DNA of 63,179 bases, the filler included, from Bigelowiella natans CCMP2755 (taxonomy: Eukaryota; Protista; Cercozoa), in assembly GCA_000320545.1 (NCBI GenBank). It is 7 parts of 7 records of this genome, joined end to end, with 100 filler letters (N's around TTAATTAATTAA, not from the genome) between each part and the next. Parts side by side here need not be neighbours in the genome. Positions count along the whole stretch, not along the records: positions 1 to 15,531 come from ADNK01002173.1; 6 more parts are not named here. One strand, 5' to 3'. Made by a program: the position numbers and the translations under genes. Below, piece by piece: positions 2,780-7,924 of the stretch (within the stretch, counting starts at the first letter, position 1; each line of letters begins with the position of its first letter). The notes under the pieces are model-generated. The model did not search any database. It had not been told where the DNA came from and saw only the letters and a program-made list of their open reading frames with translations.

Positions 2780-5700
2780 TTAAATTTTTTCAATGGTTAT
2801 CCTAATGTAGCTATGCAATGCAGCGGCTACAGCGCTTAAGTTGTATCTGTTGGTTTCCTTGGTCACATGATGCATGCATGAAAATGCACGATGATTAGGT
2901 CTAGCATGGCGCGCTTCTCGCGCAGCAGCTCGACTTGTTTTTTCTGCGGGTGTGAGACGCGCAGTTTCGTCATTGCGATCCATGATCGCCGTCAGTTGTT
3001 TGTTGAATCTGAGTCTCTGTGGGCCGTACTTGCTGCACTGCAGAATGTGGTCCATGTCTTGCAATGTGTTGCACGCAGCGCACGTTGCCTCTGATTTTGT
3101 GCGCTGCCCTCTGGACAGCATGAATGATCCAAGATTGCCAGCGCCACAAATGGCGCGCATCCATGATGTGGCAATGCTTGGCAGCTTCAATGTGATCCCT
3201 GTTGTCCGCGAACCAGGCATGAAGTCTAGTTTCTTCAAATGCATGGCCTTGGTTCCCTCTTTTTTCCAGTTTTTTTCGAAATTAGATGCGGCGTTCCGCA
3301 TGATCTTTTTGTTGTGTGCACTCAATTTCTTTTTCAGTGTTTCGTTGGCAGCACGAGTTGTGGGGCATTCCGCCCGAAGCAGTTTGGTCGTGATCAAACT
3401 GAGTCGGCGGTGCAAGGACACTCTGTTCCACGATCTAGTCGTGTTGTGCCATTTGTGTTCCATCAAGGATTCAATGTGACAACCGAAGGAGCTAGGGAGC
3501 TCCAATTGAGCACTTCTTCTTCCACCACGTGTCCGCTGCCAGCAACGTCCTCCACCCATGCATTGGTTCGCAACCATGTCTTGGTGCACTGAACCTGTGT
3601 GCGATGACGTGGTGGCAAGGTTGCCGCTAGTGCATGGGGGGTGTCGTTGGACATGGACCCTGGTGATCCCAGCACTCTTTTCAGTGTCTGTGATTCCATG
3701 GAATCCAGCTGTTTCACTTTCATGTTTTTCTTGGACCTCCATGCAGGTGCGACGTGTCTGCTTGTGGCTGTGAACCACGTGCGGTGAAACTTCAATCTCA
3801 CATTGAATGGCATGTGAGATCGAGTGGAACACAGCCTGAGTGGAAATCTTCTCTTTTTCTGCAGCCTCATGTGCACAGCAAGGGCGTGTTTTTCGAAAGT
3901 TGATCTTTCGTCAAACCACAGCCCCAAACACTTGCCACATTCTTTTCTTTTCATTTTTCCTTGCAGGTTGAGTGTTGTGTTCCACAACGCTTGTTTTTTG
4001 TGTGCATCCATCCTCCTGTCCATCAGGAGGTGTCCACTCTTTTCCCCGTTGAATCTCATCCGCCACTTCATGCACCAGGTTGTCACACTTGTCAAATCTT
4101 TTTGCAACCTGGTTTGCATTTCCCCCCAGCGGGATGGCGCAAACAGTTTGCATGGGGTGACATCGTCGCAACGTGTTTGGTGGTCTGCAAACTTGATGTG
4201 CTCACATGTGTCGTAGCAGGTGATGAACAAGTAGCAGCTCAGGGAGGATCCTTCAGGTGCGCCGCTTTGTGGTCGCATGTGTTGTGATGGCGTGCTGCCG
4301 AATTTGAATCTGGCAGCACGTTCCCTTGGCCAATCGTCGATCCACAGAAGCAGGCTTCCTCTTGCACCGCACTTGTCACTCAGCTTCCGCACCATTCCTG
4401 AGTGCCAGGCTTCAGGGTGAGCTTTCGATGCGTCAGTGAACAGCATGATCGCGACTAGTTTCTCATTGAATGTGCCGTCTTCGAGCCGCTGAGTCATTCT
4501 GGTGAGCGCCGTCTCGCATGATCTGTTCTTCACAAAGGCGCATTGACACTTGCTCAGTTTTCCTGGTGGAATGGCTTCACGCAATCGAAGTTCAACCAAT
4601 TTGTCCTCGACTTTCGAGGCAATTTGGAGAAGTGAAATTGTCCTGCCGTTGAGGGGGGTGTTCAGTTCTTTCCCGGGTTTGGGGATCAGGCAGAAGACGG
4701 CAGCTTTTCGTGTCTTGTGCCGGGTGCCCCATTGAAGTGATGTGTTGAAAATGAGAGCCCAGAGTTGATGCAGCTTGTTGCTTTGCTTCAACGTGTTCAG
4801 ATGGATGCCATCGTCGCCTGGGGATTTGCATGGCGACATTGTGTGCAATGTTCTCTGGATTTCCTCGGGGGTGAATTTCCTGTCATGAGGTGAAGTGCCA
4901 TGTTTGTTTTCCGAACTGCGGAAGGTTTGTCTCCATTGTTCGGTTTCCTGGTGAAACGTTCTGTTTTTTGCATCCGTGGGGTGAGGTTTGCACACGTCCT
5001 TCCACCTCGAGACACACACGTGGCACTTTTTCGTTTCTGAAGTTTCACCGTCAAGGGCACGAAAGTCATCCTTCCCTCTTGATTTTTGGAACAGTTTGCA
5101 CAAAAGTCTGGTGTGGCTGCCGTTGTTGCACTTTTCGAAGCGAGCAAGGAACTTTTGCCATGCTTCACATCGCAATGTCTCTGTGACAGATTCAAGTTCA
5201 AAGTTGATTTCTTTGATTTTTTCTTCCAGTTTTTTCCTCTTGTTGCATTTTCTCTCGTGTCTGAGAGATCTGAAGAGTTTCACTTGTTGTTGTTCAATTT
5301 TCTTGCATGCTGGTTGGTTTTGGTGTGGTTCAATGGGGCTCCATCGTTGCTGTTTTTTCGGCGCACTGATTCTGCATGCTTCTTGAACAGAGTTCCAGAA
5401 CCATTGCTCGAGGCTCTTGGAATCCATCTCAGATGCAACGTGGAGCATTCGTTGTCTCAAAGGGGCTGCGATCGAGTCCAGTTGTTCGTCAAACAGGTCC
5501 ACATTGAACTTGTCAATGTCGCAAATCATCGACTTGGTTTCGATTTGATTGGGCGCAGCTTTTCCAAAGTGCATGCCGAAGTGGTCGCTCGTTGCAGTGG
5601 TGGTCATTTGATGTGCGTTCAATTTCTTGGATCACGTTTGACGAACACACAACACGATCAATCGTGCTCGTGTGTCCTTTCCGAAAACAAGTGACTTCAC

Positions 5701-6244
5701 CAGGATTGAGCATCATGAGATCATTGTCTGCAAGCCACTGGTGCAAAAGTTTTCCCCTCCTGTCTTCTTGGTGACGGACATCGAAGGCAGAATGTTTGGC
5801 ATTGGCATCGCCCACAACGATGTGATGCTTCCACTTTTGTTTTTTCACAGTGTCCGTGATGAAGTTGAGCCTCTCCTCAAGATGGCACACATCGCAAGGT
5901 TGTGAGCACACCATTGTTGTTGCACACCTTTCTGTGCGATGTGTGAAGAAGCTCGTGTCACACTTGTTGTTGTCCATGGTCACGTGTGTGACATCTGCAT
6001 TTTTCTGGCGCAGGCCGAAACTTCCAGAAGGCCCGCTGGTGCGCATGATCTCGCATCCGGGTGGCGGATGTGATTTTTCTGTGTTTTTTGATCTGTCCTC
6101 TGCAAACCACGCAAGCTCCATGTTGTTTGCAGAGATCACTTCTTTGAGCATGTTGCATCTCCGATTGATTCTCTGTCTCCCTTGTTTGTCCGTTCCGTTT
6201 TTGCTCCGTGTGTTTTGGAAGTGAAATGGCAAGGCTCTGTGCAT
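2780..6244 (-). pseudogene. LINE ORF2 (apurinic endonuclease + reverse transcriptase + Zn finger), frameshifted and mutated
   Basis: Track ORFs 5513..6301, 3463..5622 and 2780..3832 join through two frameshifts (~5620, ~3480). Likely start ATG at 6244 (MHRALPFHFQNTRS, restorable to an APE N-terminus like MYRALLFYFQNIRS). Catalytic YxDD reads RCDD. Confidence 0.9.
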
Positions 6245-7678
6245 TTTTTTGCTTTCTTCTGTTCTCGCCATGCCCTGATCCGTGGCCATCTGCCTTGGCA
6301 AGTGATTTCGGCGTTCAATGGTTTTTCAACTTCATCTCGAGAATTTGCGAACAGTTAGACCAAAGGGCCCTTCCCCATGGGTTCCACTGCTTCGATTTTT
6401 GCGTCCACAGCACTTGTTTCGACGATCTGTTCAATCATTGAATTGCGCACTGCCTTGCTCTGTTCATTGGGTCCCAAGCGTGGTCCTTTCATCACCACGG
6501 AATGGTTGGTGGGTCTTGACATGGCTGGGCGGATGGTCGATGCGAATCTGAACAGAGAAGGGAAGAAAGATGCAGAAAGCTTCTTGTGTTCGGCTTGCAG
6601 TTCTCCGATGTGAGCATCCATTTTCGGCTCTTTGCTGCCCCTGAAAAACACTTTCAAATGGTTTCTTTTCCTGGTTTTGCATTGGATGCCCTGGAACGCA
6701 TTGCCGCATTTCTTCGCGAAAATTTTGTGCATGGCGAATTCAGTGAGGCCCAGTTTCCCGATGATGTCGGGTGCAATTTTTGAATTCAATTTCCCAACAC
6801 TCAGGGGCACTTTGTCTGTTGGCGTGGTTTCTGCCGGTTCCACTGGTTTGGGCAGGTTTGCAGCAGTCTCAATTTTTTTCTCATCTTCCTCGGAGTTCAC
6901 TGGGGTGTCCAGGTCAATTTGTTTGTTGACCTCACATGTCGCCTTTTTGTCGGATGATGATGCCACCTTTTTTTCCTTGGTGCTTTGGCTGCTTGGTGCA
7001 GCGGGTTGGTGTTCTGCGGACCCCTCTGAGATGATCATGTTCGCGTCAAGTTCCAAGATGATCACGTTCTGTTTGTGTTTCCTGTTGTGTTTGTTTTTCT
7101 TCCTCGTCTGTTTCTTGGGAGTCTGCCACTGTCCTTGTGAAGTTTCCCGTCTTGTCTGCCTTGGGGGTGTTGTGGGTCCTTGTGAGGACGTTGCCGTTTC
7201 ATCGTTGCGGCATCTTGTCACAGCAGCTGCGCAAGAGTTTTCGTCTCTCCCCGTTTGCTGCAAACCTCGGGGGGGGGGGGGGGGGGGGTCGATTCTTTTT
7301 GAGCGTTACGAGCTCTTGTTCAACCTTGGACAGTCTAGACTTCAGCGAGGTGTTTTCCGCGATGATTGTTTTTTGGCAATCCATTGTTTCTTCCAACACA
7401 GTGGAAAGAATTCTGTTGAATTTCTCCATGTGTGCTCCCTTTTCCCGACTTTGGTTCATCACATCAGATGTTGCGCTTGCAAGTGCTTTGCGGATGCATT
7501 GAGATGGGTCAAAGTCCTTCCTGTCTTCACCTTTGTCACTGGTGTCTTCATCTTGCAGGTTGGAGTCGAAGTTGTAAATTGAACATGCGTTTCCTTCCTT
7601 TGTAGTTGCTTCTGTGGAGTTTTCTTCATGGTCATGTTGCTTAGTTTTGCTGCGCGTAGCGTAGGTCTTCGCGCGCAT
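6136..7678 (-). pseudogene. LINE ORF1 (coiled coil, SYAAAV-like motif, probable RRM-like region)
   Basis: ORFs 7199..7678, 6355..7263 and 6136..6318. Coiled coil ENTSLKSRLSKVEQELVTLK; SCAAAV resembles the typical ORF1 SYAAAV; frameshift in the G-run at ~7268-7288; internal TAA at 6355. Confidence 0.7.
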
Positions 7679-7924
7679 GTGCGCGAGGAGAAGCAGCTAG
7701 CGTAGCGGTCACTAGGCTGTTTGAAATATGCACATATGTGCATACATACATGGATAGCCAAACGCCAAGATGCAAGGTGCATGATCAAACAATTCATGCC
7801 CACGTGCGTGGCGCGCACACATCAGTTGACTTCTTGCATGGCCACGTAACCCCTTGCAGCCAGGCATCGATCGGCAGTCATAACCCGACATACAGCATGA
7901 TACACGTGCCACCGATTGTGTCAT

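Follow-up and report, generated by a model that had tools for sequence, protein, structure and literature searches.

The DNA analyzed here is a window of 63,179 nucleotides from Bigelowiella natans CCMP2755 (GenBank assembly GCA_000320545.1), in which 7 parts of 7 records are joined with filler between them; the locus described below lies in the first part, positions 1 to 15,531 (record ADNK01002173.1). Alignments of genomic copies place a full-length retrotransposon without long terminal repeats, a long interspersed nuclear element (LINE) of what we call family A, on the minus strand at about 2758-7756. From most of this copy the dinucleotide TpA (TA) has been erased, and we consider it very probable that the LINE was first integrated and then subjected to a host hypermutation that is specific for TpA and acts on both DNA strands.

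The element was delimited by comparison with its relatives in the genome (91.4 Mb in 3736 contigs), a search of which returned dozens of copies that have one end in common and are variably truncated at the other. As judged from these alignments, a single shared end combined with variable 5' truncation is the pattern of a LINE. The shared 3' end, placed by an alignment of 22 genomic copies, lies at window position ~2758 (conserved ...CATCCGTCTCA on the sense strand), and (TA)n or (TATG)n-like simple tails abut it in many copies. The 5' end of the window copy, at ~7751-7756, is the point where homology with the full-length copies L002 and L022 stops. As expected of a LINE, the element carries apurinic-type endonuclease and reverse transcriptase (RT) domains, with remnants of a first open reading frame (ORF1) upstream. 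Comparisons at the level of individual loci cover 30 genomic loci, and since the copies are mutually related, counts drawn from them are not fully independent.

Two intact elements served as references. L026 belongs to a sister family, family B, and harbors an intact ORF2 of 1164 aa (L026:727-4221). L031 is the contig that encodes P0001, a 1158-aa protein from Tara Oceans and NCBI metagenome data found with the L026 ORF2; the window copy is 83.5% identical to L031 over 4.98 kb. All coding parts of the window copy lie on the minus strand. The RT part of ORF2 (3457-5622) contains a 719-aa open frame at 3463-5622, which matches Pfam RVT_1 and shows 84% ungapped identity to P0001 residues 218-931. 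The N-terminal, apurinic-type endonuclease part (5513-6301; Pfam Exo_endo_phos_2) is in a different frame from the RT part, and P0001 residues 2-218 match it at 5615-6265. The C-terminal part (2783-3493) matches P0001 residues 922-1158 at 83% and P0007, a B. natans protein fragment from the Joint Genome Institute, at 87%. P0007 falls within the 90% cluster of P0001 and is 100% identical over 173 aa to genome contig G000:C3316, a match that assigns the genome to B. natans or to a strain nearly identical with it. The ORF1 remnants (6355-7678) occupy two frames, 7199-7678 and 6355-7263, and are 74-75% identical to the L031 ORF1.

The TA-erased core, a feature without strand, extends from 2903 to 7574 and holds 12 TA in 4.67 kb, 6 of them in the context CTAG. 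At the 3' edge of the element (2758-2902; no strand) TA is largely kept, with sites at 2769-2902. At the 5' edge (7575-7756; no strand) TA is back from 7575 onwards, the same sites being kept in L002 and L022, and the ORF1 N terminus encoded there still has its Tyr. An earlier note on this DNA had counted only 7 TA in 3361-7260 and none in 4458-6355, and both counts are exact (the seven lie at 3436, 3493, 3628, 4214, 4232, 4456, and 6356). Over 3100-7450, which contains 11 TA, the observed/expected ratio of TA is 0.04, compared to 0.74 in the flanks, while CA stands at 1.83, TG at 1.32, and CG at 0.73; with CG at 0.83 in the flanks, the note was also right that CpG is not depleted. Sliding windows give the same picture, TA dropping at ~3000-7500 from about 0.6-1.0 to 0.00-0.17 as CA climbs to 1.7-2.0 and TG to 1.1-1.6 and CG holds at 0.55-0.82. 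The identical TA-poor pattern is found in more than 20 copies on different contigs.

Comparison with intact relatives identifies what became of the missing TA. Within family B, L025, L026, and L027 are ~99% mutually identical with a TA observed/expected ratio of 0.68, and the ORF2 sequences of L027 and L026 differ at 6 positions only. L030 is 92% identical to L026, and its element part has zero TA: over the aligned stretch, which includes a little flank, 147 TA of L026 became 70 CA, 69 TG, 5 TA, and 1 CG in L030, and 141 of the 187 A>G or T>C differences fall in TpA. In family A, all copies in the assembly are TA depleted (observed/expected ratio, 0.00-0.36); ancestral TA sites were inferred from alignment-column patterns and not from a known progenitor. 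L031 has a ratio of 0.62, intact relatives overall 0.62-0.68, and of the 207 TA of L031 aligned with the window copy, 83 became CA, 75 TG, 22 TA, and 3 CG, the 22 kept sites lying mostly at the ends of the element. These two direct comparisons demonstrate that the loss of TA is mutational and not a native composition.

The changes are written into the encoded proteins. The 719-aa ORF had been described as holding 2 Tyr and many His and Cys; we count 2 Tyr, 31 His, and 26 Cys, against 27 Tyr, 25 His, and 11 Cys in the same stretch of P0001. Relative to P0001, 15 Tyr are replaced by Cys and 7 by His, and the Tyr of the RT motif YCDD is now Arg (RCDD). The restored motifs that the earlier note had proposed on reverting TG and CA to TA match P0001 for SKAY, GVP, ERLTF, and WLRER; KCLG, which it had derived from KYLG, is instead native, because P0001 also reads GKCLG. 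For the active site it had proposed QIYCDDVTLY, of which QIYCDDVT agrees with P0001 while the ending is TPY (QIYCDDVTPY) and not TLY.

Under the genetic code, conversion of TA to TG or CA cannot produce a new in-frame stop codon, and the frames therefore stay open. The proteins are thus ruined by missense changes only, with Cys or His replacing Tyr, Ser or Pro replacing Leu, Thr or Met replacing Ile, and Ala replacing Val. L004 (G000:C3248:62236-65709), a TA-free family A copy and the best full-length ORF2 match among the family A copies in the genome, still has an uninterrupted ORF2 of 1173 aa with 88% identity to the intact relative. Since TAA and TAG are absent from TA-free DNA, long overlapping ORFs are open on both strands, and most of the 26 ORFs of at least 100 aa found in all frames of window positions 1-15531 lie within the element (e.g., 2780-7818). 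Gene predictors run on TA-free relics of this kind will report false coding sequences.

The two strands were hit to the same extent. At TpA, the sense strand of the window copy shows 80 A>G and 87 T>C changes relative to L031, and that of L030 shows 69 and 70, respectively, relative to L026. Along L030, TG and CA follow each other at random (72 runs versus 70.5 expected; z = 0.26, runs test). Such an order indicates that the sites were hit in many separate events and not in a single processive burst; processive deamination of a single strand in bursts is ruled out for L030 by the same runs test. Double hits, which give CG, are rare, and a site thus ceases to be a target after a single hit.

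The changes also depend on sequence context. The rate of A>G per adenine is 0.40-0.53 after T, which is near saturation because only one adenine per TpA step can be hit. For AAT and CAT the rate is 0.06-0.08, and for the remaining contexts ~0.01-0.05, the lowest values (at most 0.02) being found after G. In the family A alignment, 76 columns mix GT and AC, above a background of 9-27, and this excess fits a minor ApT target. Among TA sites in the interior of copies, 26% are retained in the context CTAG, with site 3436 supplying much of this signal, compared to at most 6% in other contexts and ~0% in ATAT, TTAA, and ATAA, and CTAG thus appears to be a poor target. Site 3436 of the window (CCTAGT) keeps its TA in 16 of 18 copies.

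Copies were converted independently of one another at many sites. In family A, 200 alignment columns mix TG and CA, compared to 9-27 for most other mixes of double transitions; TA is present in some copy at 50 of these columns, CG at 33, and both at 6. Decay of CpG was considered as the source of the TG and CA and rejected, CG being near normal and the source dinucleotide being TA in intact relatives, although the 33 columns that contain CG in some copy may reflect a minor CpG contribution in family A. Pairs of copies that are 96-98% identical elsewhere differ in the choice of TG or CA at ~30% of sites (52 of 180 for L002 and L004; 55 of 176 for L003 and L005), which implies that about twice as many sites were converted independently. 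In a separate case, L008 (G000:C1810:120174-124841) and L013, which lie 6 kb apart, have 98% of their TG/CA choices in common, and here a local duplication seems to have copied a block that was already converted.

The TA-free zone matches the extent of each copy. At 5' junctions pooled over 20 copies, the TA observed/expected ratio is 0.70-0.82 from the first 100 bp outside, whereas the 200 bp just inside the junction have 0.27-0.31 and the sequence beyond them 0.12-0.18. No mutation leaking into the flanks is seen at these junctions, and the (TA)n tails beyond the copies are intact.

Within copies, conversion weakens toward the ends. Ancestral TA is kept at 24-27% of sites less than 100 bp from a copy's own truncation point, at 12-13% of sites at 200-400 bp, at 5-7% at 400-1000 bp, and at 2% beyond 1 kb. 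The 3'-terminal 150 bp keep 30-40% of their ancestral TA across copies, compared to 2-10% in more internal sequence. The effect holds when the same sites are compared between copies: retention at matched sites is 20.1% less than 200 bp from a copy's 5' end versus 3.2% more than 600 bp inside (odds ratio, 7.6; Fisher p = 1.4e-14). Shorter copies also keep more TA (Spearman, -0.51; p = 0.014).

Some TA-free stretches do lie next to the copies L002, L006, and L008, and these are other repeats or unassigned sequence, not host genes. At L006:851-1500 and 4600-5050, two such stretches flank the LINE copy and have no Pfam match and no match among the compared loci; they are probably other converted mobile sequences, and TA is normal in the Kelch-repeat gene fragment beside them (L006:17-595). 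L002:6496-7140 is a TA-depleted 3'-end fragment of family B, 88% identical to L026, that adjoins the family A copy, the pair being nested or adjacent converted elements. In L008, nearly the entire 4.6-kb locus is TA free, including repeats of no assigned family on either side of the LINE fragment.

In the window itself, a solo fragment of ~70 bp (7915-7982; plus strand) lies ~160 bp past the element. It matches the family A 3' ends of other copies, keeps its TA, and accounts for the direct repeat D19, which pairs 2777-2820 with 7939-7982. Abundant (TG)n/(CA)n microsatellites, trinucleotide repeats, and long poly-C and poly-G runs occur around the element (at 2412-2509, 8130-8270, 8650-8730, 10020-10070, 13620-13670, 1302-1333, and 7268-7290). 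A Pfam search of the window flanks recognized no host gene.

Not every copy of these LINEs has been converted, and some, such as those at C1680, C616, and C1129, are converted in part. Family B comprises at least 12 copies at 99-100% identity, of which at least 9 have intact 1179-aa frames, and these near-identical copies keep normal TA. Among L025, L026, and L027, only about 2-3 of the ~10 differences are of the TpA type; one difference, TCTGA versus TCCAA, sets TG against CA at one dinucleotide and suggests that TpA is hit rarely and at a low level even in spared copies. The remaining family B copies are 81-96% identical, and L030 is among them, its 92% identity being about what complete loss of TA yields. 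That long, identical, multicopy elements are spared speaks against a simple RIP-like (repeat-induced point mutation-like) sensing of repeats and favors a state particular to each copy, for instance its silencing, chromatin, or age.

The earlier note knew of no such process in eukaryotes and put it forward as possibly novel; the same TpA hypermutation has in fact already been reported for B. natans. Mutation accumulation in 15 lines yielded 302 nuclear single-nucleotide mutations, of which 231 hit one or the other of two integrated viral regions, a single-copy, transcriptionally silent giant-virus region of 186 kb and a virophage region (Mettrop et al., bioRxiv 10.64898/2026.01.13.699255). Of these 231 mutations, 230 changed A to G or T to C, in each case at TpA; the rate was ~6e-7 per site per generation, and the mutations arose in only some lines and during clonal vegetative growth (bioRxiv 10.64898/2026.01.13.699255). 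The viral insertions are only partly depleted, one having a TpA rho of 0.45 and the other not being depleted. The same preprint lists 324 TpA-poor coding sequences, among which RT, endonuclease-RT, and DDE domains are overrepresented, together with 124 genomic clusters that are poor in TpA, and it proposes as the enzyme an ADAT2-like deaminase, Bn78255, which carries residues associated with DNA editing (bioRxiv 10.64898/2026.01.13.699255). Retrotransposon copies, boundaries, the influence of edges or of length, and contexts beyond TpA are not analyzed there (bioRxiv 10.64898/2026.01.13.699255).

The likeness to the process seen at the LINEs is close: the organism is the same, A>G and T>C at TpA give TpG and CpA, the changes are confined to nonhost sequence, and coding sequences with RT domains are TpA poor. 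The preprint describes ongoing mutation in partly depleted viral inserts, whereas the LINE copies are near saturation, with 95% of TA gone. What is new here is the copy-level resolution of the boundaries, the edge and length effects, and the context hierarchy; exact confinement, random choice of strand, a minor A/C-A-T target, and the sparing of both CTAG sites and young active copies are all added to the published picture.

The published rate is compatible with this end state. At ~6.9e-7 per A/T site per generation, with TpA making up 3.3% of dinucleotides, the rate would be ~1e-5 per TpA per generation, and a loss of ~95% of TA would then need a few times 1e5 generations. Outside TpA, L030 has diverged from L026 by 2-3%, which at a background rate of 3.5e-10 would take far more generations, so saturation is expected. 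By the same reckoning, the young copies (~0.1-0.3% divergence) would also be saturated were they targets at the preprint rate.

Taken together, these data allow a stepwise account of how the window copy would have arisen. After integration, the LINE copy would have been exposed to a host hypermutation specific for TpA. Each TpA:TpA step would have a single one of its A:T pairs turned into G:C, yielding TG or CA with equal probability, and the converted step would no longer be a target. Hits would build up singly over many generations, within the element and more weakly near its ends, until TA is nearly gone. As for the chemistry, a deaminase, TadA/ADAT2-like or of another kind, would turn adenine in DNA into inosine, and a silencing mark or homology signal would presumably recruit it. 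Both strands are hit equally, the edge effect follows each copy's own ends, and the limits coincide exactly with the junctions, all of which indicates that the process works on the integrated copy. The earlier proposal of A>G changes on both strands of integrated DNA is thus borne out by the equal shares of TG and CA, by choices that differ between close copies, by the junction limits, and by the edge effect. It had further proposed a repeat-directed adenine deamination defense: the process is indeed targeted and defense-like, but at least 9 near-identical intact copies are untouched and the main target in the preprint is single copy, so that the data do not establish it as repeat directed.

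Several observations weigh against this account or narrow it. L031 is an environmental relative and not the direct ancestor of the window copy, and about half of the 16% divergence of the window copy is consequently ordinary drift. Some TG/CA choices are common to copies at different sites (0.97 for the window copy and L017, as well as subfamily-wide patterns), so either some converted elements were copied onward or partial conversion predated some insertions. TpA is self-complementary, and A>G is therefore indistinguishable from T>C on the other strand, which leaves a thymine chemistry fitting equally well. Finally, the deaminase loci detected in six-frame Pfam searches form only a household-sized set, with one A_deamin locus (C2414) and six loci of the cytidine deaminase (CDA) fold (C980, C3623, C3286, C3588, C570, and C1679). 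NAD1, OTT_1508, and MT-A70 had no match in the six-frame Pfam searches of the genome, which are weak on intron-rich genes and in which controls were also without a match.

One alternative keeps the targeted process and its action on both strands but assumes a different chemistry: the T of TpA is modified or excised and then repaired or copied as C, or N6-methyl-adenine or another adenine adduct is mutagenic. The statistics used here do not separate such a chemistry from deamination, TpA being its own complement, and the lack of any expanded or unusual deaminase family in the six-frame searches is in its favor. Nonetheless, we regard it as unlikely. TadA, ADAT2, and ADAR enzymes prefer a 5' U or T before the target A, and this preference explains the observed context most simply; the failure to match MT-A70, in a search weak on intron-rich genes, also counts against the alternative. 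A further point against it is the ADAT2-like protein with residues associated with DNA editing (bioRxiv 10.64898/2026.01.13.699255). Deamination of adenine would thus be the simplest reading of the chemistry. If the duplex has to open locally, this would also suit the full conversion of AT-flanked TA and the incomplete conversion of CTAG.

A second alternative is a true analogue of RIP, in which DNA-DNA homology between long repeats triggers mutation over the length that they share. The sharp limits at copy ends, the weaker edges, and the dependence on length do resemble RIP in Neurospora. We likewise hold such an analogue to be improbable, since the full-length family B copies (at least 9, 99-100% identical) have normal TA and intact frames, and the 3' end, although shared by the largest number of copies, is the least mutated part. 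Moreover, the main target in the mutation accumulation lines is single copy and mutates in clonal vegetative growth (bioRxiv 10.64898/2026.01.13.699255).

Editing before integration fares considerably worse. Here the LINE RNA, edited at UA by an ADAR- or ADAT-like enzyme, or the first-strand cDNA would be deaminated in the course of retrotransposition, and insertions would arrive already mutated. Confinement to the element would follow automatically, the hierarchy of 5' neighbors (T >> A ~ C > G) is like that of ADAR and ADAT (a likeness also drawn in bioRxiv 10.64898/2026.01.13.699255), and some TG/CA patterns are common to copies at different loci. Such editing predicts changes on one strand, in conflict with the equal and randomly interleaved A>G and T>C counts of the window copy and L030, and editing of a full-length RNA does not predict weaker conversion near a copy's own 5' truncation point or in short copies. 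Strand symmetry combined with the edge effect is a strong argument against editing before integration. In addition, clonal lines acquire such mutations de novo in viral DNA that is integrated and single copy (bioRxiv 10.64898/2026.01.13.699255), and we therefore consider this explanation very improbable.

That the element is natively TA poor through codon or dinucleotide bias or through selection, with no hypermutation at all, is almost certainly wrong: the absence of a TA-rich family A copy from the assembly and a TA-poor patch near the 3' end of intact elements would suit it, but the intact relatives have near-normal TA, sister copies show TG where others show CA or TA, conserved Tyr codons are replaced by Cys or His codons, and the comparisons of L026 with L030 and of L031 with the window copy refute it. 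The patch just mentioned spans ~500-700 bp of the C-terminal coding part of ORF2 in intact elements of both families (L026:800-1500, L025:1000-1500, L027:3600-4300, and L031:4250-4800), with a TA observed/expected ratio below 0.15. It could be a relic of partial hypermutation that was tolerated in a master lineage, a chimera with a converted copy, or the result of TA avoidance.

Among known systems, RIP in Neurospora and other fungi shares with the process described here the in situ hypermutation of mobile DNA by transitions in one dinucleotide context on both strands, as well as confinement to the repeat, weaker action at edges, and stronger action in longer copies, all three of which are seen here. 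The outcome is the reverse, in that RIP changes C to T at CpA and so creates TpA and stop codons, whereas here A:T becomes G:C and TpA is destroyed without stops. RIP is also a premeiotic burst on all duplicated copies, while in B. natans young copies escape even when identical, DNA present only once can be hit, and, according to the preprint, hits accumulate singly in vegetative growth. Hyper-editing by ADAR and editing of fungal mRNA by ADAT2/3 (Tad2-Tad3) are likewise A>G, with 5' U or T preferred and 5' G worst; those enzymes act on RNA and leave a one-strand mark in retro-copies, unlike the equal marks on both DNA strands found here. APOBEC3 and AID provide a precedent for host-driven, context-specific hypermutation that inactivates retroelements, but they convert C to U (G>A on the plus strand) in single-stranded cDNA, with a one-strand bias and creation of stop codons. 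Hypermutation of A:T to G:C at TpA in integrated foreign DNA is a very unusual defense signature, opposite to those of RIP and APOBEC.

We tentatively suggest, as a possibility short of an even chance, that a defense enzyme active in vegetative cells deaminates adenine at TpA in duplex or transiently opened DNA and is guided by a signal that reads the extent of the copy. This signal may be homologous pairing, or a small-RNA or heterochromatin mark nucleated inside the element. If true, this would explain the exact junction limits, the decay over a few hundred base pairs at both ends, and the dependence on length, and also why CTAG is spared and AT-flanked sites are fully converted. We know of no characterized counterpart to a natural, targeted DNA adenine editor, and a natural enzyme with TpA adenine-editing activity would be of interest for base editing. 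For B. natans, the LINE copies are end-state targets of the process and as such constrain its mechanism.

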